DNA from: Paragordius varius
Lineage: Eukaryota; Animalia; Nematomorpha
Direction: 5' to 3'
Length of the DNA: 64,000 bases
Assembly (NCBI GenBank): GCA_964247055.1
Contig: OZ176050.1
Span: 12,338,001 to 12,402,000 of the forward strand
How positions within the stretch are numbered: position 1 is the first letter of the stretch; every line of letters begins with the position of its first letter. Below are positions 5,254-63,649 of the stretch, piece after piece. The notes beneath the pieces are model-generated. The model was not told the origin of the DNA. It worked only from the letters and a program-made list of their open reading frames with translations, and made no database searches. Made by a program: the position numbers and the translations under genes.

Positions 5254-5520
5254 CAGTAAAAATTGGAGAATTATGCGGACTCACAAAACGAAATATCAAA
5301 TATATTTATCTAAAAAACAACCAAACTCTTAATTTTTTAAATATATAGATCATTGTTTAAAACTTTTAAGTATATATTAGAGATTTATAAAGGTAACACA
5401 AGTAATTATATATTTTACAATAAATGATATTTATATGATAAATTAGGGTTTAAAATGTCTTTTGAAAAAAATATTGTCTTAATAATTTTACGTTTTGTCC
5501 GTATATTTCAATTTTTACTG
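5254..5520. mobile_element. MITE family A (Tc1/mariner-type, ~270 bp)
   Basis: TA|CAGTAAAAATTGGAGAATTATGCGGAC ... TTTTGTCCGTATATTTCAATTTTTACTG|TA; imperfect TIRs and TA on both sides. Confidence 0.85.
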
Positions 5521-9458: not shown

Positions 9459-9738
9459 CAGTCAAAATTAAAATTATACGGACAAAACTTAAAAATATAA
9501 AGACAAGACCAATATTTTTTCTAACAGACGACGTGCGATACTTTTTAAATCATGACTATTTTTTTGTTTTAAACAGAAAAATATATAATAGAGATGTTAA
9601 TTGGTAACACCATCAATATATATAATTGTTATTAACTTTAGATAAAGGAAAAATAGTTTAAAAAATAGGTTGTCCTTTGAGAAATTGAGAAAAAAAGTTT
9701 TGTCTTTATATTTTAAGTTTTGTTTCAATTTTTACCCT
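9459..9738. mobile_element. MITE family A, degenerate copy
   Basis: CAGTCAAAATTAAAATTATACGGACAAAAC left end; right end and internal ggttgtc motif are eroded. Confidence 0.6.
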
Positions 9739-19900: not shown

Positions 19901-22900
19901 ACAAAGTAAGAATTAAACTATAAAAAAATAGATTTGAAACAATTTATAGACATCAATCCAATAACTTTAACCAAGGGTGCTCAACACAAATGACATTTCG
20001 GGCCGCATTCAAAAAATATATGGGCAATAATAAATATTTAATTAATATCCAAAAAGCTATAATTATTACGAGAACAAAATATAAAACTCATTATTTTACC
20101 ATTTGCCAGTTTGGTGCCTAAGTTTGAAATGACTCATTCAGAAATAGGGCAAGCAATATTAATTTGAATTAGATTTAATTTATAAATAGTAATATTTTTG
20201 CGAATTATGGAATTTCTTTGGCAATTTTCCAAATTGTTTATGGGCCTCACAAAATATCTAGGCACCCCTGTCTTAAACTATTTATCTTTATTATATGTTA
20301 CCCACTCTTTATTTCAGAACCAATTCTGTATTGGGGTGATCGTAAAACGTATCGCATTGAAAGCATCAATTTCGATGGTTCTGGTCGACAAGTGCTCATT
20401 GATACTAAACCCCAGGACAATCTATCATTTGATAGCGAGGATGATGGATTAAGTCCACCAGCCACTAATATGGATTCATTTAATGATAATAGCTATGATA
20501 ACTCTGCTCAAAGCAGCCGAATTAGTAAACAACGTCAAACTAAGGGCAGCACTCGAATGATTCAACCCTATTCGATGGCCCTTTATCAAAGTCGCGTTTT
20601 TTGGGCAGATTGGGGCACAGGGGCCATCCTCAAATCTTTATCTTTTTATCACACTGGAAAGTATCAAAGGAATGATGTTATAAGCAAATATTTGCAGGAT
20701 TATGATAAACCTAAATCGTTAGTTATGCTCTCAACTTCACCTACAAGTAAATTTATAAGTTTTGTTTTTTAGGTCTAACATATATGGTGGAAAATTAGTT
20801 TTTTTATAAATGTGTGTAAATTTATTAAATTATAATTTACATTGTAAATTTTTGTGTTACTACCAGCATTTTTTGGATTAAAATTCTGATCTTTTTTCGG
20901 GAAACTCTTCATATAATATTTAATTTGTACATCATTCCAACGTATTTATATTTTTCTTTCCATACCAGGTAAGAAACAATTGCCCTATTATCCCTGTTTC
21001 GACAGTAACAAATGGTGGACTAATACATTAAATTACAATAAAAATAATGATAAGAAGAATAAAGGTAATTTATGTAGCCAACTATGTTTACCAATACCCA
21101 AAGATAGTATAACACAAAGTTATGTGTCATCATCATCTCAAACGGCCTTTAGAGACGAAACTCAAATATCAGATTGGTGGAAAGATTTTCATACTGGTCA
21201 CGTATGCATGTGTCGCGATAATATTGGTTTATAATTTGCGGATATATATATATATATATATCAAATCTTAAAAGTGATAGTGCTATTTGGAAACTAATTT
21301 CTGGTTTTTAGGATGTAAGCAACAAAATGCGATTTTGATAGTTTTACAACCAACCTGGTTTTGACTAAAAAAAACAAAACACTGTTTTTTAGCATCTGGA
21401 ATTTTGGGTAGTTTTCACAAGAGCTTCTAAATTTTTGAAAATATCATTTTAGCATAAAACTTTACTCATTAATTTTGTGTATGCGGTATCATTAAGTTTA
21501 CTTCCGGCTCTTATTTCAATAGCAATTCCAGTTTTAATTTTAAAAAATTAAGAACCAATTCGGTTTCGATTTCTCTTTTTTTGACTTGATCCCTGATTTA
21601 AATCTATAGATTAATGCTTTGTTTAATTAATAATTTTAGATAAAACATCTTCAGATTCTGGATTATGTATACGAACTAGCCAATCCGGGAAACAGTTGAC
21701 ATCCAAATCAAACATTCAACATTCATCATCGCTCATAGTTTATGATAGAGCATTAGGTCAATTAGTTTATGTACGTGAGGGGCAATTCAATCAACCCTTA
21801 GTCAGCGTTGGTTCACAATCTATCGTAATGTCTTTCGATTGGGATCCGGTACAACAAATTTTATATTGGCTAGAATATGTGGGCCATACATTAGGGAAAC
21901 GAAAGTCACCTTCGGCAGCGTTATTGGAAAATTCTCATTCCATCGATTTCTCATCTTTCACCTCATTTTTAGGGGGGACATCGAATGGAATAAATTCAAA
22001 CATACAGTAATAATTTAAAGTAACCAGACAAAACGTAAAATATAAAAGACATTTTTTATGAAAGACAACCATACTATTTTAAAGCTTGATTTTTCATCCT
22101 AAAGTATTTAATTAGAATAATCAATTATAAAATTAAGCGTAATAACAATTTGAATTTACATATTTTGTTCCAAAGTGATGAGTTATATCTATGAAAAATA
22201 GGATTGTAAAATATAGTTTAGTTGTCTTTGAAATGCCATTTAGTTTTTACTTTTTTGTTATATTTCGTTTTTACTGTACCTTTCTATAGCATTAACGGGA
22301 GTAATGTCTTAATGAATGATGAACACGCCATAACAAGTTATATTGCATTGAATTTTGTAACGCTTGAAACCATCAATGAGAATAATGCAAACAATAAAAA
22401 TAGCAATGATGTTGGGACTCTTCCTCAGTCAACCGTGGTTATAAAGGCTTCGTACGTTAAAACTATACGGACTTTTAATCCAATAAGTAAGGAATTACTA
22501 GGCAAATTTTAAAAATTTAATAAAATGTCTTATTTGTTTAGGTGTATTTTTTAAGGATAAGCTTGGTATCAAGAATGTTTTTTTAAAATACAAGCTTCTC
22601 CTTCAAAAATTAAAATATTTTAAAAAATATTCAAAATACGTCATTTTAAACATGAAAAAAAAAACGTTTTGCAATCAAATCTGTGGTGTAATAGGGTATT
22701 AATATTATAAGCCAAAATCCTGAACGTTTAAAATTTAGATTATTGTTTTGTTATCATCAGCATTTTTTCCCACTAAAATAACATATATTTTTTTTCAGTA
22801 ACCAAACCGGAAAGTATGGCATTTAATCCATTATCACGTTTGCTATATTATACGGATTCAGTTCGGCGTACTATTTCAGTCCTAAGCCTTAATGGCCACT

Positions 22901-25900
22901 CCGAAAGAATCTTGATTAAACGACCGACGGCTTACAAACCCAAGCACATTCAGATAGATTACATGGCTGGGTATGTATTAAATATTTATAATTCCTATAT
23001 TTATAGTTTTAATCGATTAAATTAGAAGTAAGATTAATAATTAGTAAATTCTTAAGCATAATAAAAAGTATATAGTAATGTTTCCTGTTATTTAAACATA
23101 GTATTTTAACATGAGATATATCATATATTCATTACGCTGTAAAGTTTGATGTTTTGGGTTGAAGTGTCCGAATTCGATAAACAATTTTTTTCTGCCTGGA
23201 CAGATGGGAGTAACATTAAAACGTTGGCTCAATCAACAACTACCACAATAAGTTCCTTGCATATCTATCCACCTGGTAAAACTTGATTTCGGATAATATT
23301 AAACAATATGTTTAGGCAATATATATATATATTTTTACGTACAAAATTTTTTTTAAAAAGTCTTAGTTTTAACCTATAAATTAATCAATTTTGCGTAATG
23401 TATATATAGATAGATAGTGCAATTTTCAATTAATTCATCTCATTATACACATACAAATACACACACCAATAAACTAAAATTTTCTTTTTATTATATCGAT
23501 TTTTTGTACATTTATCCAGAAAAATTGGTGATTTGGACTGATGCAGATTATTCCATTGTAGAAGCTATAAATTATGATGGGGGTGAACGCAGACCTCTGC
23601 ACATTTATCAACCGTCTCAAACGAAATCTTTGGCTGAACAAAACACAGCTAATGACCCGACATTGGCTAATTCAATCTTTAACATTGCATTTATGGGGGG
23701 AAATCGATTTGCTGTTTTATCTAAGGGTAGTTCACATATTTTCACCTATTCAGATATGTTACATACCATAGTGCCGTCTGGTAAGTTACCACCATCCCCC
23801 GATTATTTTGAACCACACGCCTTAATTATACCAGAAACTTTAAAGTTGCCCACACTTATGTTAACAATCAATGATCAAGACACAAAAACTGTAAAAGATG
23901 AGTTGGAAAGCAAAAATCCCTGTCTTAAACCCGATAAGAATGATAATGATGTAAAAATCACTAAATATGTCCCAACTTGTAGTCATTTTTGTTTAGTTAT
24001 ACCCTTAATATTTCCATCTTCTTCCTCTGATGGGCTTGCTAAAATAACCCGCGTTTGTGAATGTCCGAATGGACTTACTAAAGTAACCCTACCTCCCCAA
24101 AATGGTAAAAATAGCCAAAGTAATATTGGTTTGACTCAAATATTTCGTGAAGTGTGCGTTTTTGATCGTATTTCACCCAACCAAGTTAATAAGCAACAAA
24201 AAACACTCATAGATTATTACAATTTGCATGGACACACAAATGATGATGCAAAAACATCGCTGATTGCGACAGAACAAAATAATAATAATATTAACAATAT
24301 TATGAATAATAATAATGGATTGGTCAAAAATGTGGAGTATCTTTTAAGGGATGAAATGTTGTATGAATCCAGTAAATACTCTTTATATATTTGTATTTAT
24401 AATATTTGATTAAAATTAAGCATTTCAAATATATAATTTAATTTTTGAATAAAAATGTTATTTTTCTTTGCATACAAATTATTTTGATAGCTCTAATTTC
24501 TTTTAAGCCATCTATAGTTCATTACATTTCCTGATAATTGTAAGATATAACAGTAAATATATCCTAACTAACAAACCTGCTTAGAATAGATCATTTTATT
24601 ATTAATTGTTTTTTTAAAATCGTAATTCAATGTTTATCTGGATAAAATTAACTTATTTTATTTTTTTTATTAGAAGTTATTATAAATGGTGTTACATTAT
24701 ATAATTATTCTATTAAGTTAAGAAAGAATCCCAATTGTTAATTGATTATTTAAAAGTTTTTATTATTTTTAACTCTTTGAATGAAGCAACTGTGGGATTT
24801 TTAATAAATATTTACAGTAAAATATGTAATTATACCGACGAATTTTTAAACTAACAGACATAATTTTTTTTATAATAGACAGAGTGTTAAAATCAAAAGA
24901 TTAAAATTTTTAATTTGCGGACAAATTTTTTTTATACGGACATATCCGAAATATAATAGAGTAAGAGGAGCTTTCATCTATAATATTGATAAATAATAAC
25001 CCTCTGAATTCTAGTCGGCTAAATGTTTACTATGCATTTTATAAGAAGCTTTACAACTATAACATAGCTATTGATATTCACCAACTTAAGAATAAACCAT
25101 TTTTGATTTAATATTAACTAATATATTTAATGAATAGGATTTAATAAATCTCGCATTTTATTAAAATTGAGGAAAATATTATTTCTTTTGCATTATTAAC
25201 ACCAATCATAATTGTAAAATTTAAAATAACCTTATTATAATTGTATTCATTTTAAAGAAACTTCTTTACTATTGAAAAATAATAATAATCCAATTTTTAA
25301 TCTTATTAATCTTATTTTTACAATGTTTCCAATCTTATAATAAATTTTAATCGAAAATATCAATAGTCTAATGGGCTTCTACACTGAGTGTATTTTTAGA
25401 TTATATAACATATCAACTCTCTTTATTATATTGTTAGGTGGGACAACTTTCAATTAACGACAAGATGGGACTCTTCTTAATTTTAAACATCTACCGTATA
25501 AGCTCAATAAGCAGACGATTAAATACTAATCGTCTGCTTTTAATACTAATTATAACTGCAATATAATGTAATAGAGACAATAATTTATTAATGTAATATT
25601 TATATTAAAATAACATCAATATAAATCAATTGTAAAAAAATAAATAATCGTGGAAAAAAATAAAAACACTGGTAAATGCCTTAAAAAATATCTATGTCCG
25701 AAAACAATTACTGATTAACCCTATCATCGCAATAAAATAGAACGGGAACAAGTTTTAAAGTTTTTTTACATGATTGTAATGAAGAGATTTCCAACTATTA
25801 AATATATGCATGCGGTTGAAATATAAAATATTTGATGATGATTTATAAATTAATATTTTATTCATCCCAAACATTATAAATAATGTCTATCCACCGTATT

Positions 25901-31900: not shown

Positions 31901-34900
31901 TTAATAAAATATTCAAACTTATTATATTAAAATTATTGGATAAGCTTTTCAAAAATTAAAAATTGGGACAAAATAACATTTTTAAAGCCAATATTTAAAT
32001 AATATTCGGATTTTTTCGGAGATTTTAACATGTAAATTTTTTTTAAACCATAATAACGCTTTTACTAAATATCACATTTCAAGTATTTAATTTTGACTAT
32101 GAATACGTGTATATTGTGTAAAATTTACTATTTTGCCTTATAGAAAAAGGACAGCTGTTTGTATCGATTAAGTTTTATGGAAATCACAAATATGTAATAT
32201 TATTATCTAGGGTTTTTAAATTTAATATATTATCGATCGAATTATACCATAACCATAAATTTGTACCATATACCCACAAACTTAAACCATTTTTTAAATT
32301 TGAAATTATATTTATAGAACTCTTTTGAAAAATACTATGAACCGGAACCGAAGACATACTTAGTGTAAAACGTTTGAATTAATCTTTTATGGATATAATG
32401 CATCAAATCAATCAATTACATTTTAAAAATTTGAGATATCAATCAATTGATTTAATATGTGTGTCATTCGATACGTTCTTTTTATATTATGGCCATATCG
32501 ATGACATATAAATCCATTGTCATTTAATTTCAATATTTTATTAGATAATCTATTGTATTGGATTGATGAATTAACCATTTATGTGAGTAATAATGTGGAT
32601 GGTAAAAATGTTCAGGCCCTACTTAAAACAGTTGAATATGCAAATCAGCCAACCTCTTTAGTTGTTACACCTAAAACTCTGTATTGGTCAGATGGGCAAA
32701 GCCTTATTTATGCGCTCGATAAATCATATTTGGGTTATTTTTATGTAGATTAAAAAAAATTTTCCATTGGCAAATTAGTATATAATTTTTATTTGTTATA
32801 TGCTTTAAAAATAATAATTTCACATATTATGCCAATGTTTTATTTTTTTGATACCCTCTTTTTATAATGTTCACTCTGAATTTTCTTTCATGCTCTATTC
32901 TCTTTAAACTATGAAAATATTTTGAAACTATGAACAAAAGAAATTTAGAAGCTTAAATTCTCTTTATATAGGGTATAATGCCCAAAACGATAACCCATAT
33001 GAGACCTTAAAAAGCCCCGTATATATAAAATATACCCAACCAACCGATGTAAATGACGAAACTATAAGTGGACAGGACACAACAGTCGATGAGCAATTGG
33101 ATGAAAATGAATCTAGTAAATAAATTTTAAAAGATAATATTTCTATAGGTTTTTCCATTTCAAAAAAATAATTTTAATTTATAAAAAAAGAAAATATGCA
33201 TTAAATTAATACTCTTTATTGCATTAGAAATACCTGCAGGAAGCCGAACGATCCAAATTGGTAAAGAGATAAAAATACACAAGATAAATGCCGCAATCAT
33301 AAAATTAACTAATCTCAAATATTTCAATGTAACGCATTGGAGCACTCAAATCTCGAAATCCGATAACTCGGATAAGAAGCATGGTTTTAAACAGGTTGCA
33401 TTTTTTCTAGAAAATTGAAACAATAAGAGATCAGTTTTGTTTGAGAATGAATATATTATGTATATTTTATAATACCATCAATTTAAATTCAGATTTATAA
33501 AGCTTTTTTTTACGAAAATTGCTAATATTCTAAAAAATTTTTTACAAAAAAATTTGCATTTGATATGTTATTTATAGCTATTTGCCTATGAAAGTTGTGA
33601 AGCCAATACCGGAGATCATAACCAACAACATTCTTCAGTTAAAACCTATGGAGGGTGTAGTGATTTTTGTTTCCCGAAATCGTATGCCCTTCAAAACAAG
33701 CTTTATTCTTATAGAAACCATAATAAAGAAGCTATTAAAAGTGAATCTAGGAATACAAAGAAAACCCGATTACTTCGGTATTTGCTTAAAAGTATGGGGC
33801 GAAGCTGTCAATGTGCCCAACGTATAGGCCATTTATCCATAGATCTGAAAAGACAAAATATTCTAAGTTCTGGTTTTTCTGGCTTAACAGGAAACAACTT
33901 CTTGGATACTTATTTACAGAAGTACATAAATAAGACTGAGAACAATAACACTAATATAAATTATGGTAAAATTAACAATCAAATGGTTCAAATGATCCGT
34001 GAAACTCTAACATATTATACTTTTGGTAATTTTGCGCCTTATTAAATTTAATTTTAACGAAACTAACTAAAATTTGGATTTTTATAAAATAAATTTTGTC
34101 AAATGCTCATAGTAAGTAATTTACATTTTACAGCAAAAATGTAATTTTTTAGTAACCCAGTGTTTTTACATCATTTATTATAATTATAAATTTTAGATCA
34201 AATTGAAATCCCAGCACATCTTTCCAGTCTTTATCACAAATTAATTGGTAAAAATGATGGCGACCAAGACAAAGATAATCAAATTGGATCAACTAATGTG
34301 CTCTTAGACGATGGGCTAACTTGTAGTGCTTCTACACTTTGTCCATTGTCCGGATTTAATGAGGAGGAATTACAGTGATACTTTAAATTACAAAAAATAA
34401 AAGACAAAGCAGTCATACTTTTTCTACGCCTAAATTTTTTTATTGATTTGGGTTGCAAAATGAGGTGGAGAGATGTAAATTGGTAAAATACCAAACTATA
34501 TTATATTTTACAAATGTAATCCATAAACTTTATAAAAAAATCAAAGTTTAAAAATGATGGTTGTCTTTATACATAACAAATGTATTTGTTTGTTTTTTAA
34601 ATTTTAACTTTATTTAAATTTTTATAATTTTAATTTTGATTGTTAGATTGAACCCTAAACTCGTTGAAAGCATAAAAATTTTAAACCATGGAAACGGAGT
34701 CGAATTCGGAAAAGCTACATATGAATGCAAGACCGGTTATCGAGATACAAATCAAGAGACAATTGAAAGAGAATGTATTATAAACGAAAATGAACAAGGC
34801 CATTGGATGGGAAAATTATTGGATTGTAGGCGTAAGAATTCTTCCAATACAACATATTTTAATAAAATTAACCAATTTTTTTCATTATGGATGTTAATGA

Positions 34901-35103
34901 TTTTTGATTAATAGAGCTATTACAGAATATTAAAATAAATTGATTAAACTTTTTTAGATTTGTTATTATTTTATATAAAATACACTGGTTTTTGGCTTAT
35001 TTTTAATCGTTATGTCAAATTAGCAAAAGTTGTAGTTAAATATTAATAAAATCTCATTAGATTGGCATTAATTTTTGCCAATAGATATAAACAAACAATT
35101 TTG

Positions 35104-35142
<39 letters not shown>

Positions 35143-35866
35143 CAATAAATCTGGCCAAATAAAAATTTTATGTTTTAAACTTAGCATTATCTAGAATATA
35201 TTTTATTAGCAATAACTTGTAAAAACCTACTAACTCATCACTCAAACGCCATAAAAATGGTTTATTGTGAAGGGAATACCGTTAATTCAACCTGTGAACT
35301 TGATTGTATGAATAAGAGCTCCATTTACATCAGTGGTGATCGAAAGCGAAAATGTCTGCCAAACGGAGAATGGTCAGGTGAAGCCCTGAAATGTCAAAAT
35401 TTATTGGGCGCTAACGAAAATACAGATACTGGTAAGTTTCACAATCAAGAAATTTATTTCGAATTTAAACGACTAATGATTGGCTTTTATGATATATCTA
35501 ACGATAAGCAAGTGTAATTAATATTATTTAAATCACATAAGATTTGAAATTTAAATGGTTTATATTTTGTTAATAAATATACCATTTACAGTTCAAATTC
35601 ATCCTTGAACAATTCAAATTCACCCTAAAATAAATTGTGTGTTTTTAAGATTAAAAATTACTTTTATTTTATAATATTTTTAAAATATGAAATTCTGGTT
35701 AAATATAATACATTGCCGAAAACTATCTATGTCGTATAATGATGAGTTATATTATCCCGAAAACACATAATTTATTTTTAGGATGAATTTGAATTGTTTA
35801 ATGGTGTTTTTAAATTGTTTGAGGGTGAATTTGAATTGTTCGAAAATGAATCATAATTATAAATGG

Positions 35867-35916
<50 letters not shown>

Positions 35917-38900
35917 TATATTTTAAATATTAGTTTTATCAATCTAGGCTCATAATTAATACCTTGCATTTATAACGCATTCTGAATTATGTGAAGTTTC
36001 ATTTTTTTTACTATGCAAAATATCTCCCTTTTTATGCATCTAATATTTTGATATGTTAAACAAACTAAATTTATTTTGCTTTGTAAATTCATTCCTATTT
36101 TTTTATTCCATCATCATAATAGATTCAATGAGTGGTCCACTACACTGTGTTTACCCAATTCCAGATTACAGCGATAATGTTGATATGATTCGTTGCCCTT
36201 ATATGCCACGGTCAGGGGACGCTTGTGAATTCCGATGTCAATCCGGTCTTGTCCCTTTATCCGGTTCTTCAACGATCATTTGTGGGCCAGATGGCCAATG
36301 GTCTCAACCACCTTTAAAATGTCGGGGTATGTGTGTCTCACCAATGCTTTTTTGACATTAAATCATTTGCATTTTGAGCAATTAAGTATACCATTTGCAC
36401 TTCAAGAGTGTCGAACACCTTAACTTGGTCCTTGACACTTGTTGGTCCATAAATTTTTTTAAGTTTGGATTTAACCATAAATTTTGCGTGGATTTATTAA
36501 TTATATTAATTTTTAACCTAATTTTCTAGATATATTATATATTTGTTCATTTAAAATTAATATTTTTGATTATGAACTAATTTGTTTTAATCTCTACCGA
36601 TTCAACAATATTCGTAAATCATAAATGTTTTAATAACAAAAAATTGTATAGAAATTTATATTTTCGATTATCTTATTATAATTAAAATAATTTTTAAGAC
36701 CTGATAAAGATGGGTTTCCGAATGATTTTAATTTGATATTGATTTATAAGTTTGGAATCAAGAGAATAGGTTAAAAATGATAAAATATATTAATGATACA
36801 CGGTTTGATTGATAAAAGGTAAAAACAAATTAAAAAATTGAAGTTGAAGAACCAACTAGACAAACTTGGAGTGTTGAAGGACCAACTTGAAGTTTTCAAG
36901 GACACTCAAAACAAAATAACTTATGTTCATATTTACATCTTGTAAATGGTTAATATAAAACAGTTTGTAATTATTAACCTATTCGCTATATAACTATAAT
37001 AGCGCATTCATGTATCGTCCCACCCGTACCCTATAATGGTGAAATAATTTCTTGCAGTGATGCCATAAACCATGAGGTGGGGAGTCGATGTTTTTATCGC
37101 TGTGAACCAGGTTACTTCCATTTGGGCGGAGATGAGATTGTCGAATGTATGGCTGATGGAACTTGGTCTGGTCAACCGCTAGTTTGCGCAGGTAAAGGGA
37201 ATCAGATTTTAAATTGTTTCGATCAACACTCAATAATTGTTTTTAACGATTTTTATTATACCTTATTGACCTTTTTAAGAACATAATTATGTGAAAATTA
37301 TTAAAAAGTTTTTGTGAAACTTAAAACTGTACAATATTTGCTTATGACTGTCAGCCTTGAGCGCACAATCATAAAATATGTCATCGGTTCAGTAATATAG
37401 ATAAATCTATTAAAAATTTATTTAAATAATATAGCGATGTTTAGAAAGATTTTAAGCTATCTATGAACCTTCCCCTAAAAAATGAAAATAAATCCATAAA
37501 AATTTGGTTTTTGCCACCGCTTTAAATAATTATACTAATCGCCCTAACAAAGACTTTGTTAAAACCTATCGTTTTGGGTTGTGATATAAGTATTAGATAT
37601 GTGGTGGACGCATTCAATTTTATATTTCATTTTTGTAATCATATACATTTAGAAAATAACTAATGATAAAATATATGGTTTTCTTTATGAAAAAATATAA
37701 GTCTTTCGCTTTTTACCATTTTTATAATCTAATATTTGTTGTAACTTAGAATGTTTACCCTTAACTAAACCAAGTATGGGTTATTTGGATTGTAAACTTC
37801 AAGGCTTGTCCGTTGTGTGTGAAGTTAAATGCGATGCGGACACTATACTGTTAAATCAAACGCTTGTGTCATCAGAATCGAGTTCGGTATTTTTCTGTGA
37901 TCCAAAGACCCGCTCCTGGTATCCACCCAACACTGAACCCTTGAGTTGTACAGGTTTTTTGTACAGCTTTTTATAATTTCCTTTGTTGTTTTTATATAAA
38001 TGCTGGTTCTCAATTATAAAATACGAGAGGCGCCTTTTTTAAGTACATGTAGGTTGTTTCTAACAAATTTAAATTTTTTTTCCATCCTATATAACCTATG
38101 AATTTTTTCAAAAATGTACCCCTGAGCAAATATACTTATATTTTAATCATATTTAGTGCTAGTACCACCATTTCTAACCTACACTCAAATCGGATTAGAT
38201 GTTGACATTGATATTTCTTTACCTCTTGTCCTTAATCATCCCATGCCTATGAGTATGATCGATTCAAACAGCGATGATTCTCAAAATGTCGAAACGACGC
38301 AATCACCAATGGTTATAACTGAGGTGGAACAATTCCAAAAATTGTGTAGCAATGAAACAGGAATCTCTATGTTACGTGATAATTACAATTTAATCTTCTA
38401 CTTGGATTGGGCCGTTTATTTCCATACATGCTTTGAGAAGGGACAGTTCAATTGTCTTTTAACGCAATACGATATGCACAGGGCTGAATGCGAAATAGCT
38501 CCACCCAAAAATCGTATGGTACCTGTTGGTGGTGTTGGTACTCAACAAGAATCGACAAAAAAGGTAGTTTCAACTGAATCATCTTTAAATGATGACGACG
38601 AGAGCAACTATTTAACAGACTCAGACCCCGACACGGATGTAGAAAATGTATGGGAAGAGGTACATCATACACAAAAAAGTAGCCCTGAAAATTCTAAAAA
38701 CTCTAATATAAAAACGGCAATCGGAATATTTAAAATGAATTATACGGCTGAACTTATTAACCAACATTTGATTGAAGATAATAATTATAACAGTGATGTG
38801 TATTCCCATATTAAAGCCCTGAAACATGCTAAAAATGTATTCTCCCTATCGGACATTAGTAAAATGTTTCGAAATAAGATTGGAACACTTGATCCCATAA

Positions 38901-46179: not shown

Positions 46180-47918
46180 TTAATTAGTCATTTTGCCAAA
46201 ATATGCTAAAACAAAATTAAACACAGTAAAAAGGAAAACATGAGTTGGAGATATTTGTGGTATAAAAGCAGAACTAGAAGAACCAGAACCGTTAACGGCT
46301 GAAGTCACCATTGAATTGCTAGAGTTTGCACTGTTATCATTGGAAGACATTGATCCATCTTTACTGTTTTCCATATCCATATTGGAATTGTTAACCATTG
46401 TTTTGGACATATCAATCCCTCCCATAGTATCATTCGATGTTCCAATATATCTGCACACATGAAAACAGACATTATACAGTAAAAATTAAAATTGTACAAA
46501 CAAAAACGTAAAAACTAAAAGAATATTTTTCACACCATGATGGTTTTAAATACAACCTATAGTTTTGAATTGGAAACTAGGAAATAGAAATGATTGGCAA
46601 AATACTCTACTATACATTTCACAATTTGATTATATATGGTTTATGATGAATATATTATGATTTAGAAATTGTCTTTTTTTTCAAAAACATATGTCTTTTT
46701 ATTTTTACGTTTTGTCTGTATATTTTCAACTTTTACAGTAAGTATTTGTTTAAAAAGAGGATACGAAAGTTACATATGGGTTTACTAATCTAAAAAAGAC
46801 TCTAGTTTTTATTTTAATCCTACCTGACAGAAACATTAGCATTGCAGGCATCTGAGGTGCAAAGACAAATCTCAGAAATGTAATTTGGAACAATCTGTTT
46901 CCTTATGCAAGCAAACGTTATGTTATGCATTGACATATCGCCATCCTGATCCATCATACTGTTATCCGATGTGTTGTGGGCTTTTGTCATATTCATTTCA
47001 CTCATGAGGTGAGCCATATACCCAGGAACTATAACTAAAATGCATTAAAAATATGAATTTTACCCATGAAATTAGCGACACATATAAAATCCTACCTTCC
47101 TTGCTAGATAATTTAAAAGGGCATTAAATTTAGTGGTTAAATAAGAGACAAAACTATGGACCTAAAATTTAAGGTATAAATAAGATATTTAGATAGTTTA
47201 AGACATACCAATTCCGTTCAATTAATATTCGTTTAAATTATATATTTGATGAAAAAATTCTGTTTATAAACCCGTTAAATATAATCAATATCTTCCAAAC
47301 TTTATAAATTTTAAAGGTGAAAAATACCGGGTTGCATGGGTCCAGTACCATTCTGTTGTAGCGTGTACCAATTCATAGCGGTATTATTAACTTGCATCGT
47401 CTGAATATCATTAAGGTTTGCGCAATCACGCATATACCTATTAATAAAAAATAATTTTTAAGCATTTTAAAAGTTTTAATTTTAAACATCATGTTTACAA
47501 CCACTTTTAAATGTTGAATGGCTTGGATAATAAAAATTATTATCATACTATGTATTATATGATATTCCGTTTCCTTGTACCACTTATTCAATTAAAATGT
47601 ATTAAATTTCTGTGAAATGAATTACACCATTTTTATTTAAATAACCCCAATTTTAGTAAAATGAAACACGACATACCGTATCTCCTTGAGTATGCCTTGT
47701 TGAGAGTAGATTCGCTGTATTGTTTTCTTGCACATTTGCGCACCTGAACAAGCCTTCATAAACTTTTGATCCATGGCCGAAGTTCGATTCGGCATATATC
47801 GATCATCACATTCGGGATCATTCACGCTTGAACAAACGTAACAGTTTAAACTGTTGGCTTGTTTTATCATAGTGAGATGCATTGCCAAAAACATGAATAG
47901 TAACAGTGTCATTTTCAT
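46180..47918 (-). CDS. Ly6/uPAR three-finger protein (quiver/sleepless-like), predicted GPI-anchored, 275 aa, 4 exons
   Basis: Exons 47918-47677, 47437-47328, 47028-46824, 46450-46180 (828 nt). Signal peptide MKMTLLLFMFLAMHLTMIKQANS; LNCYVC..C..C..C..RDC..C..CLCTSDACN (10 Cys); Ser-rich omega region and hydrophobic C-terminus. Confidence 0.88.
46477..46738. mobile_element. MITE family A in Ly6 intron 3
   Basis: TA|CAGTAAAAATTAAAATTGTAC...CAAAAACG and TTTTGTCTGTATATTTTCAACTTTTACAG|TA. Confidence 0.8.
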
Positions 47919-51334: not shown

Positions 51335-53575
51335 ATGGCCCAAGTAATTAATCCCAGAAACAGATATTATTGCCATCAATGTATGCGAGAAGTTATACCT
51401 ATAACAGTTAAATCTTTATACATTTTTAGGATTTTACATGTCCGCATTGTCATAGCGGATTCATCGAGGAGTTACCTGAAAATCAGGCGCCAGTAACCTC
51501 TACGATGCAGCAAAATACTGGGAATCATGCAGCACCTCCAATTCTTTTTAATTTGTTTCAAAACTTTTTTCCTCACGCCTCTCATAATGCTCCGTTGCCG
51601 AATGTAACCTCGGTTCCTCACACTTCTACAAATCCTTCCCAAGGTCCCGTACAGATTCGCCATCATTATCCGCCTTTAAGGTTTTAATAAACTATATAAA
51701 ACTGTTTTATACAAATGTCCTAGCTTTTATTTTGGTTAAATTTTTTTTAATCAGTGTGAAATAAATACTTAAAAAATAAAACTATATTATTACACCATTG
51801 GGTATCAAGTTCTACGCCTTTTTTTATTAAACAATGATTATACGCTTACTAAAAATTAAATTTAAACCAAAATAAACCCCACTGTATTATAATATAAGTT
51901 CTAAGGTTTATCCTTGCCTCTGGTTAGGAGTTGTATTGTTTTCAACGATCATAAATGATGTTGTTTTATCATTTTATAATTATTTTTATATATTATTTAA
52001 CCAAATTTTTTAGAACCTCTAATGCACCACCCCCTACGGCAGTTTTTGATTTGGAAGGGTAAATACTTGATTTTATTTTTTAAAAATAATTTTTTGGAAC
52101 TTTTATTAAAAATGTAACTAGTTATTAATTTCAAATTTGTTAATTTTTGGTATTTTTTTCTCATGGTAATTTATTTATATTTTAGTTTATTGCAACAAAT
52201 CTTGAGCTGGGTTGATTCCGATAACACTGTGTTTCGCATGGAACCGGGAGGCGTTGTGTAAGGATTTTTACATAATCTATATACACCATTTACAGTTTAA
52301 ATTCACCCTTAAACAATTCAAATTCACCCTAAAATAATTATGTGTTTTTTTAAAATTAAAAATTACCTATATTTTTTTTATATTTGTATAAAATGAAATT
52401 TCGTTTGAAATTAATATATTACTGGACAAATAATAAACTCTGCCATAAGTATATATTTCTCATTAATGATGAGTTTTAGCCAGAAAACACAAAATTTATT
52501 TTTAGGGTGAATCTGAATTGTTCAAGGGTGGATTTGAATTGTAAATGGTATACATAACAATTTTAAAAAATTACGGTTTTCGGTTAGAAACATTAAGTTG
52601 CGCCTAAGATTGGGTTTTGATCAAAAAATATATACCTACTTGTTTAACCTCTATATTTGCAGTTATTAATGATGATAACCAGTTAATTATTATTACGATC
52701 AGATATATTGTAAAAGTATTAAACAAAATTAACAGTATTATTAGTTTTTAGTGTTAGTTTATAATTATATTTAACAATTTTTAAAATATCCATATACATT
52801 TTTTTATTTATTTTCTTAAGATAGATGAAAAAATGGTTAAATTAAAATGCTGGTAAGATACAACCCTTTTTTTAAAGTTCTATGATATATATTATTCGTC
52901 TTAAAAATTATAAATGGTCCATCAATTATAAAGTGTTTATTTTAAGTTTTAATAATATTTACCGCATAAAATTATCATTTTTTAACAATATATACTTGAA
53001 TCGTAAGTAAAAATATAAAGTTAATTTTACTAAAATAATCCATATATATATGAGTAACATTTATAACTTTTTTTAGCCAAATGTAATATATAAAGTGAAT
53101 TGTTTGAATTTGCCAAAATTTATTTTAATGGCATTAACACATTTTTTAAAAAATTACTATAGTTTTATATATCTATATCTTAATATTTCCACAAAAATAG
53201 CGGATTTATATACAAGAAACCAAAAAATATATTTGCTCCTTTACCCCTCCTACTTTATAATTAAAAACTTTAGATAACTACATAATAACTTAGTACACTG
53301 GTTTCAATCAAGATATATACCATTTACACTTCAAATTCACCCTTAAACGATTCAAATTCACCCTCAAATATTTAAAATTCACTCTAAAATAAATTTTGTT
53401 TTTTTTAAGATTATACCTATTTTTTCATATTTCTAAAAATGAAATTTTGTTTGTAATTAAATAATACTGAAAAAATAATAAACTAAACCATGAGTTATAT
53501 TAGCCCGAAAACACTATTTTTAGGGTTAATTCGAATTGTTTAAGGGTGAATTCGAATTTGTTAAAGTGTGAAAAT

Positions 53576-53817: not shown

Positions 53818-56800
53818 TTTATTGAATACGATTACCCTGGTTCTGGTGGGGCTGGCCGACATTTTCACTCTAATACGACTTCAGGGGGATTCCCTAATAT
53901 CTTTGGTAATGGTTATAACTTATAAAATTAAATTTTTGCAGGAAATTGAGGCAAGCCTTGTTGGTTTGCGAAAATTTGGCTTTAAGACTTGAATTATTAA
54001 ATTGGTGTTTACTATAAAATAATCTACTAACAGGTTTGGGGGTGTTCCCATAAATTATTGATTTAACTTTTTATATGATATACGTTATAAAGTATTCAAT
54101 CCAATAGTTATTTAATTTAAAGCAATCTTTACCAATCAATTTGTCTGAAACAAAAAGGGCGTTTAGGAATTATTTTTAAAATGAGAGCTATATTATAAAG
54201 TGTGAGATGAAAAACACATACTTTTGTCTCTTTGCATTATAAATTTTGATTTGAGTTACTTTAGTATAAGATAAAAAAATTTTGTTTAAAATATATATTA
54301 AAATAAATGATATATAAATTATAATAGGCAGGCACGTCCAATTTAGTCCCATATTTTTTATTATAACCTTATACATAATTATAAAACATAATTATTGCTA
54401 CTACAAATTATAAATTTTTTAATTCCATTTTAACTTTTATTCTTGACAAATAATTTTTTTTCGTGTTGAATATTTAGGTAACCTTAGAGACTATGCCTGG
54501 GGTCCCGGGGCCCTTGAAGCCATTATGGAACAGCTGTTCAATCAAATTGAGGGTCAGGGAGTGCCCCCTTCCTCTCCTCAGACGATTGATAAACTGCCAA
54601 CAGCTGTTATCGATGAATATGATATAAGTTTGATTATTGATTAATTTCTTTATTTTTTTGTAAGAAAAGAAATGCGGATAAAATATTAAAGGTAAAATTA
54701 TAAAGACAATCAAAACATAAAAAATGAAAAATTGTTAATTTATTAACCATCTATGTTTTTACAACCCTATTTTTTTATATAAATTATATATTAAAGTTTG
54801 TGAAAAATAGTATTAAGGTGTGTATTTGCTTTAAGTTCAAGTCATCGTAATATCGATTAAATAAAAGTATTACGGTTTTAAAATAATATTTTTGCAAAAA
54901 ATGTTAGTCTTTGACTTAATGTTTTCTGTGTTTATTATAAGTTTTCATTGTGTTTTTCTCAGGAGGGTTTCCGTTCAATAGCTTTTTTTAAATTATTATT
55001 AAACATAATAATTATTACTTTTACATTAATTTATTTAAATGTCTTAGAACAAGAATTACAATGTTCCGTTTGCATGGAATATTTTAAGATAAAGGAAAAA
55101 GTTAAGGCTCTCCCCTGCGAACATTTATTCCATAAGGATTGCATTATACCATGGCTAAATTTGGTAATTTTTTTATTTATATTATACGGTTGTTGTATGT
55201 TAATATTAATTTATTCGTGGCAAACAATACTAAAATTGATTTAAAATATGATATGTAATGTATAATATTTTACAGGTTTAATAATTAATTTTCAAAATCA
55301 ATAACTTTTTGTTTTAATTTTAAGAATGACCGATTGACTGTCGATATTTGCGACATTTTAATTAATTTTTTTTTGTTGTTTTAAAAAAGACATATTTACC
55401 CTTAATTAATGACCCTTAACATCAACATCATATAAAACGTTCATTTTGAGGCTTTCTAATACAAAAACTATTTTACGCTATATATACGCAACTTTTTGTT
55501 TTGGTTTTACACATTGATAATAACTTTTTAAGCATGGAACATGTCCTATTTGCCGTAAACCTGTCGGTCCTGAATCTAAAACGTCTGATGAACAAACTCA
55601 ACCCTTAAACATACCTTCAACACTTTCGAATTCAAATGCTTCAAATGTTTCATCTAACAATGCAATGGGTGGGCGATCTAACAGTGCAACTCCTAGAGTA
55701 CAAATCCCATTGTACCCTAGAATAAATACTAATAGGTTATTTTATCATTTTTTTTATATTTTTTTTTCAATTCGATGAGTTTTAATTAAGTAAATTTGGT
55801 AAAGTCATGTTTCAACAGTGTTAATTATAAGTAACTCGCTTGATTTTGGAAAAAAATGCTTTAAGTTAGTTGAAATATAAATAATAATTATTGTCCTTGA
55901 CACAGCCATAAAGCTTTTGGTTAAGTTTACATTTTTAAAAAAGGAAAAATGAGACTTTTAACTATATACGGTAAAAATTGAAATTATAAGGACAAAACGT
56001 AAAAATATTGAGACAAATATTAAAAGACAACCACCATACTTTTTGAATCTTAATTTTTATAATGAGAACTCATTGTTTCAAACTATAAAGTAGGAAATTA
56101 TGTAAATTCACAAGCAATTTATATAGTATACGATTGTAATTAAATTATTTTTATAGGATAAATTAAGGTTTAAAAAGTACCATTGCCTTTTAGAAAAAAA
56201 TCTGTTTTTATATTTTTGCTTAATGTCCATATAATTTGAATTTTTACTGTAATTACTTTCAGGCATCCCACGCCATATCATAGATCATTTAGCATGCAAA
56301 CTGGTCCGTCCAACACCACTTATAATAATAATATTCAACCATCAAGGTTTACATCAGATGCTCCCTTTACTCGATATCGGTTTTTTCTTTTCTCATTTTT
56401 TTGTAAATAATTAGAAAAAATTATATTTTTTGGAATGAAGAATGGCAGTTTTTTTCATTTAAGATAAAATGTGAAGAACTTACATTTTAAAACAAGTTAT
56501 TATACCAATTCAAAAAAATCAAATATTATTTTGACACAAATATCATTAGATGCTAAATATTTAGATTTTTATATGATGAACTTAATGTATAAAACCTTTG
56601 ATAATGGAAATTTTGAAAATGTATATTAATTTTTTTGCCAAAATGAAAAAAGTTTTTTATATTTTAATTGTTATTAAGCGAAAAAAAATCCATTTTATGC
56701 CTATTAACAAGTATTATTACCCATTAACTTGATAACAAACAAAATTAATTTTCACAAAAAGCAGTAAAAGATAACATTTTGCACAAAAATATCCGCACAC

Positions 56801-63385: not shown

Positions 63386-63649
63386 ACAGGGGTGAATTTA
63401 CCTGAAATGTATTTATACGGACAAAATCTAAAAATATAAAGACAAATATTTATCTAAAAGACAACCATACTTTTTAAAACTTTAATCTTTAAAATTTAAT
63501 ATTTATGTTATTGATATTATATCTATTTCAGACTTTACCACTTTAAACAATGAGTTATATTGAAATAAATCAAGAATTTGGTTGTCTTTTAGAAAAAAAT
63601 ATTTGTCTTTCTTATTTGCGTTTTGTCCGTATAATTTCAGTTTTTATTG
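63386..63649. mobile_element. MITE family A
   Basis: TTATACGGACAAAATC near the left end, ggttgtctttt internally, TTTTGTCCGTATAATTTCAGTTTTTATTG|TA at the right end. Confidence 0.75.

Follow-up and report, generated by a model that had tools for sequence, protein, structure and literature searches.

A candidate intron formed by insertion of a Tc1/mariner-type MITE into a sushi exon of Paragordius varius

The gene considered here lies on the (+) strand of the window, by which we mean the whole 64-kb stretch of Paragordius varius DNA that was analyzed, in an AT-rich genome (GC ~27%) of 110.5 Mb and 44 contigs. Its exons encode LDL-receptor YWTD-type and EGF-like sequence, then a run of sushi modules, and then an ephrin-receptor-like cysteine-rich exon. 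A search for relatives of the exon at 33578–34042, a weakly conserved EGF-like/linker exon, found no match among 1.84 billion representative proteins, and the 331-codon YWTD exon at 23414–24406 had no match in a word-based protein library search, the length filter of which leaves out full-length relatives. A metagenome scan with the downstream exon gave no confirmed matches. A close relative of the host species is not in the searchable protein libraries, as judged from an HSP70 exon that reached at most 87% identity, and this to mixed animals. Outside of its sushi and YWTD cores, the receptor-like gene appears from these searches to be lineage-specific or fast-evolving. Other features of the window include long (AT)n microsatellites in two neighboring introns (35104–35140 and 35867–35914), which dominate the inverted-repeat output, and an inverted-repeat element of ~290 nt (35580–35868; arms of 57 nt, 81% complementary) that lies well inside a 691-nt intron (35432–36122), an ordinary case of a transposon within an intron and unlike the flush copy described below. 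In an RNF126/RNF115-like RING gene, the N-terminal zinc ribbon is split at 51407–51429 by a 23-nt GT...AG micro-intron in phase 0, which leaves the two halves of the Pfam Zn_ribbon_19 match in two frames.

Neighboring sushi modules of the receptor-like gene are single exons between phase-1 introns, and none of them has an intron at the position of predicted intron 19, which alone is in phase 2. Intron 19 parts cysteine 1 from cysteines 2 to 4 of a sushi module. The alignment of the downstream half with the gene's other sushi modules starts immediately after cysteine 1, and the split module is complete only when both halves are joined. Pfam Sushi matches were obtained for exons within 36044–36352 and 36978–37283, while the split halves taken singly fell below Pfam thresholds; in a search of the organism's own genome for paralogs, each half-exon found only itself, i.e. 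both are single copy. This context supports the reading that intron 19 interrupts what would otherwise be a single phase 1–1 sushi exon, and that the exon was presumably uninterrupted before a transposon inserted. The features of the locus, and of the transposon family to which we assign the intron, are collected in Table 1.

Table 1. Coordinates of the candidate intron, its flanking exons and the family A MITE copies of the window
Feature	Position	Strand	Observations
Predicted phase-2 spliceosomal intron (intron 19), GTGATA...TTGTTAG, 272 nt, GC 20.6%	34375–34646	+	retains more coding sequence than other in-frame, stop-free GT-AG pairs; T-rich acceptor
Upstream half-exon, phase-1 start, ends after the second base of a codon; linker and first sushi cysteine	34197–34374	+	open frame 34190–34375; GC 36.5%
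Downstream half-exon, phase-1 end; sushi cysteines 2 to 4 and Trp	34647–34831	+	open frame 34618–34908; aligns with the gene's sushi exons
Diverged full-length family A MITE, 270 nt	34373–34642		full-length alignment z 8.9; nhmmer 45.7 bits; 80% identity, 19 gap events
Left TA duplication copy	34371–34372		last two bases of codon TTA
Left terminal inverted repeat, outermost 26 nt	34373–34398		contains donor GT; 19/26 complementary to 34617–34642; 15/20 to family terminus
Right terminal inverted repeat, outermost 26 nt	34617–34642		terminal 20-mer 15.4 bits; anchored gapped test 0/2000 shuffles
Right target-site duplication copy	34643–34644		now TT, one change from TA
First family A copy in the gene, TA/TA flanked, inside exon	22005–22276		same CA/GT donor; acceptor 11 nt past duplicated TA
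Five further family A copies	5254–5520, 9459–9737, 46477–46738, 55969–56249, 63402–63649		mostly TA-flanked, none in open frame

From the first copy in the gene and its genomic relatives, family A can be described as a MITE of ~270–300 nt with inverted arms of ~90 nt, CAGT...ACTG termini and a TA duplication. TA flanks were present in 18 of the 20 paired copies first examined, and TA/TA flanks were kept in 50 of 86 sampled copies. A 33-mer made up of TA and the left terminus had 1599 + 1605 genomic occurrences at three mismatches or fewer, while the reversed control had none. An HMM was built from 18 full-length TA-flanked copies. A separate search recovered 40 other genomic matches at E 1.5e-8 or better. 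On this sequence evidence, family A is a truly mobile, TA-duplicating, Tc1/mariner-like and non-autonomous family. It resembles Stowaway-like or Tc1/mariner-derived MITEs in its length of ~270–300 nt, the absence of coding capacity, the long inverted arms, the TA duplication and the thousands of copies; unlike such MITEs generally, the copy at 34373–34642 would have taken on a function in its host, as an intron. The window contains at least eight substantial copies. Two of the eight are exonic, both in this gene, and the other six sit among no more than 24 open codons.

Intron 19 itself aligns with family A from end to end. The exon reads GAA TTA CA up to 34374, the intron opens with GTGATAC at 34375 and closes with GATTG TT AG at 34646, as the original prediction had described, and the exon following it resumes with A TTG AAC. 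The three family A motifs that the prediction had quoted are also present, at approximately 34399–34408, 34414–34423 and 34559–34568. We found that positions 1–294 of the consensus map to 34373–34642, i.e. from 2 bases before the intron's GT to 4 bases before its AG, in an alignment where the whole consensus was forced and the flanks of the target were left free. A MITE origin had been proposed to stand or fall against a shuffled background, and it stood: the alignment scored 51.8 against −4.3 ± 6.3 (maximum 18.9) for 300 dinucleotide shuffles, which corresponds to a z of 8.9, and the tile with intron 19 ranked alongside other true copies among the tiles of the window. The local nhmmer match to the 18-copy HMM reached 45.7 bits (E ~1e-15 on a small target set), and identity to the consensus at aligned positions was 80.4%, in the lower quartile of the family.

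The termini of the element were considered separately. At the right end, the terminal 20-mer scored 15.4 bits, a level expected at 0.6 sites over the two strands of a shuffled window. Agreement is weaker at the left end, where 15 of 20 positions match the consensus (p 0.019 if CAGT is kept fixed), and the left arm on its own gave no significant result under gapped shuffling, 374 of 2000 shuffles reaching its score, owing to its A-rich composition. Even with the consensus set aside, the ends of the intron are inverted repeats of one another in exact terminal register, 19/26 positions being complementary (p 0.0036 when CAGT is fixed), and the same 26-nt terminal pairing was reached by only 1 of 1703 arbitrary 270-nt intervals. 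The element begins CAGT and ends ATTG, one change from ACTG, and it is flanked by TA on the left and TT on the right, one substitution short of a perfect duplication; it is plausible that TT is the decayed TA duplication of an old copy. Judged by these alignments and terminal repeats, the element occupies 34373–34642 and the donor GT is transposon sequence. Full-length alignment and terminal inverted repeats together provide support at the DNA level for the earlier claim that intron 19 is co-extensive with a diverged family A MITE.

The donor GT falls within the element's terminal CAGT, the last two bases (CA) of the upstream half-exon derive from the transposon terminus, and the acceptor AG consists of host bases two past the element. 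When the element and one TA are removed, the empty site reads GAA TTA AGA TTG, as had been proposed, and restores an open frame of 61 + 88 codons. The proposed consequence of splicing at the predicted junction also holds as arithmetic: one codon changes from AGA (R) to CAA (Q) and length is unchanged, and it is correct that any TA-AG target would give a length-neutral intron. We compared candidate junctions near the element by counting frames and stops locally. Of the GT-AG pairs that are in frame and free of stops, 34375–34646 preserves the largest amount of coding sequence (120 codons), and no other has an acceptor preceded by a T-rich tract. GC content is 35–36% in the exons versus 21% in the intron. 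The GT and the T-rich TAG of intron 19 resemble the gene's other splice sites, and as a donor GTGATA is weaker than GTAAxx or GTATGT, which the neighboring introns use. From these features we infer that the spliceosome uses the junction 34374^34647.

We therefore favor, with a probability of about 0.7, the reading that a MITE inserted at a TA within a coding exon was turned into a spliced intron. By this scheme, a family A element would have inserted at a TA inside an exon coding for one whole sushi module, and the pre-mRNA would have been spliced from the GT in the terminal CAGT to a host AG that happened to follow the TA. Splicing would take out all of the element but its first two bases, along with the second copy of TA and the host AG, with the net result that a single codon is replaced, AGA (Arg) by CAA (Gln), at constant length.

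The foremost alternative, that the MITE stays in the exon unremoved, would make the gene a pseudogene or yield a product cut short by the TGA that lies just within the element. Unspliced read-through does give CAG TGA at once, the exons of this gene hold two transposon copies, and the gene is without detectable relatives in large protein libraries. Yet the insertion is old, and neither the flanking exon sequence (363 nt) nor the sushi and ephrin-receptor-like exons further downstream show a frameshift or stop; cysteine patterns and Pfam matches are kept, and more than 600 downstream codons stay open. An old copy between intact exons implies that the insertion did not kill the gene; this argument is semi-quantitative, as the family is heterogeneous and divergence from its consensus overstates age. 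The GC content of the exons has been maintained at 35–36% versus 21% in the element, and both exonic copies in the gene have in-frame GT-AG solutions. Retention of the element in the mature transcript is on this evidence unlikely.

Removal of Tc1 from C. elegans mRNAs by cryptic splicing has been described in older reports. In SOS splicing, which operates in C. elegans and human cells, exonic DNA transposons are excised at sites in or near their inverted repeats, in some cases in frame; the process starts when the inverted terminal repeats pair, ends with RTCB ligation, involves the factors AKAP17A, CAAP1 and RTCB, and uses sites that are rarely GU-AG and leaves indels (PMC12779559). Such spliceosome-independent removal could act on the intron 19 copy now, or could have done so only early after insertion. 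Besides the published in-frame excision of exonic DNA transposons near their inverted repeats (PMC12779559), this reading can draw on an exon with a CAAP1 domain in the genome (G000:C3:9724963-9725082, (−) strand; Pfam 38.1 bits, over the cut-off), CAAP1 being the sole factor sought, and on the ~90-nt complementary arms of intact family A copies. The C. elegans cases further resemble the reading favored for intron 19 in that an exon bears a Tc1/mariner-type element, CAGT-ended and TA-targeted, which is tolerated owing to its removal from the RNA (PMC12779559). They differ in being recent insertions, the junctions of which are heterogeneous and mostly non-GU-AG, leave indels and require the inverted repeats to pair (PMC12779559), whereas intron 19 is an old copy with decayed arms and one precise GT-AG solution. 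Its arms fold with a z of only −1.19, the termini are unpaired in the minimum-energy structure, and the sole length-neutral in-frame junction is a canonical GT-AG flush with the element, of a kind that SOS splicing rarely uses (PMC12779559). We consider SOS splicing quite unlikely to be what removes this element.

A pre-existing intron, perhaps a 23-nt micro-intron, into which the MITE landed is very unlikely, because the donor lies within the element. Micro-introns do occur in the genome (e.g. the 23-nt intron at 51407–51429), a different inverted-repeat element is nested in a neighboring intron (35580–35868), and the left terminus is the weaker of the two. However, the inverted-repeat register reaches the outermost bases, 34373 and 34642, with only TT and AG outside; the sole other left end of the form TA + CA (34390–34393) would leave an intron of ~19 nt and need the loss of ~30 nt of arm; and, as described above, the neighboring sushi modules have no intron at the same position. 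A MITE nested in a micro-intron was rejected on account of this ~19-nt intron and large arm deletion. Chance similarity between AT-rich sequences, for which the GC of 21%, the many low-scoring AT-rich matches across the window and the non-significant left-arm gapped test might be cited, is effectively refuted by the HMM match (nhmmer E ~1e-15), the 40 other genomic matches at E ≤1.5e-8, the full-length alignment (z 8.9) and the terminus tests (right terminus 0/2000 shuffles; end-to-end inverted repeat p 0.0036), and its likelihood is negligible.

The first family A copy of the gene offers a second candidate for intronization of a MITE. Its empty site gives an open frame of 126 + 77 codons, and the predicted splice, to an AG 11 nt further on, would bring a net loss of three codons. 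The intron 19 copy had been thought the older of the two, but the substitutions do not bear this out: terminal-repeat identity is 85.8% versus 85.6%, and overall K2P is 0.227 versus 0.222, for the intron 19 copy and the first copy, respectively. They differ in indels alone, with 49 gap nt in the terminal repeats of the intron 19 copy and 23 in those of the first copy. Across the family, median terminal-repeat identity to the consensus is 91.1%, the maximum is 35 gap nt in 64 copies sampled by similarity search, and one of the other 22 sampled copies has 53. The intron 19 copy shows ~14% substitution in its arms and 19 gap events over the whole element. By these measures of divergence, both exonic copies are among the oldest in family A. 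Despite equal substitution divergence, the first copy folds into a hairpin above background (z −2.22) and the intron 19 copy does not (z −1.19).

That two such events in one gene reflect an ongoing process, as the original prediction had suggested, was not borne out by the wider family. We surveyed 86 full-length copies from 68 other loci, with random TA controls from the same loci; in this sample, which is small and without gene annotation, none of the 86 copies had at least 40 open codons on both sides versus 6.4% of 1020 random TA sites. At a threshold of at least 30 open codons on both sides, the counts were 4/86 copies versus 12.5% of the 1020 sites. From these counts, the chance of observing 0/86 at the control rate is ~0.003. 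The idea of an ongoing process is also undercut by the age of the two exonic copies. As far as the surveyed loci go, family A is underrepresented in long open frames, the pattern that selection is expected to leave on an ordinary MITE. There was no sign of a TA-AG preference, with AG following the duplicated TA in only 2 of 100 flanks.

Intron 19 shares several features with introners. As in those systems, a DNA element with terminal inverted repeats and a target-site duplication is co-extensive with a (here predicted) intron (PMC9860276; PMC12130899), and mRNA length would be unchanged, as in most reported families. In the introners of Chrysochromulina the element likewise carries the 5′ splice site and the 3′ site is co-opted from the flank (PMC9860276). 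In contrast to introners, family A is an ordinary MITE, the copies of which are mostly non-exonic and in our sample depleted from open frames, and its exonic copies are isolated. The host is here an animal, while introners have been found in only two animal groups (PMC9860276), and the 3′ AG is supplied by host bases lying past the 2-bp duplication and not by the duplication itself. Introner families are recognized by many similar introns at unrelated gene positions, and in our sample none of 86 copies lay in a long open frame. What the comparison makes credible is sporadic intronization of a Tc1/mariner-type MITE in an animal, outside of the family-level definition of introners.

Introns made by transposons have been amply documented in algae, fungi and protists, and were found in very few animal groups (PMC9860276). 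At the DNA level, intron 19 would be a clean animal example, in which the donor comes from a transposon end and the acceptor from the host and a single residue is changed. As such it extends a known mechanism, introner-like intron gain, and reveals no new one. Two candidate events of this kind in one gene make the genome worth an annotation-based introner survey. We may further speculate that bursts of Tc1/mariner-type MITEs are a recurrent source of introns in this lineage, CAGT providing a ready donor, and that fresh exonic copies are first tolerated through hairpin-triggered SOS splicing and later fixed as precise GT-AG introns as their arms decay; on the sequence evidence at hand this broader scenario is doubtful. 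If true, it would tie intron gain to an RNA repair system that was described only recently.
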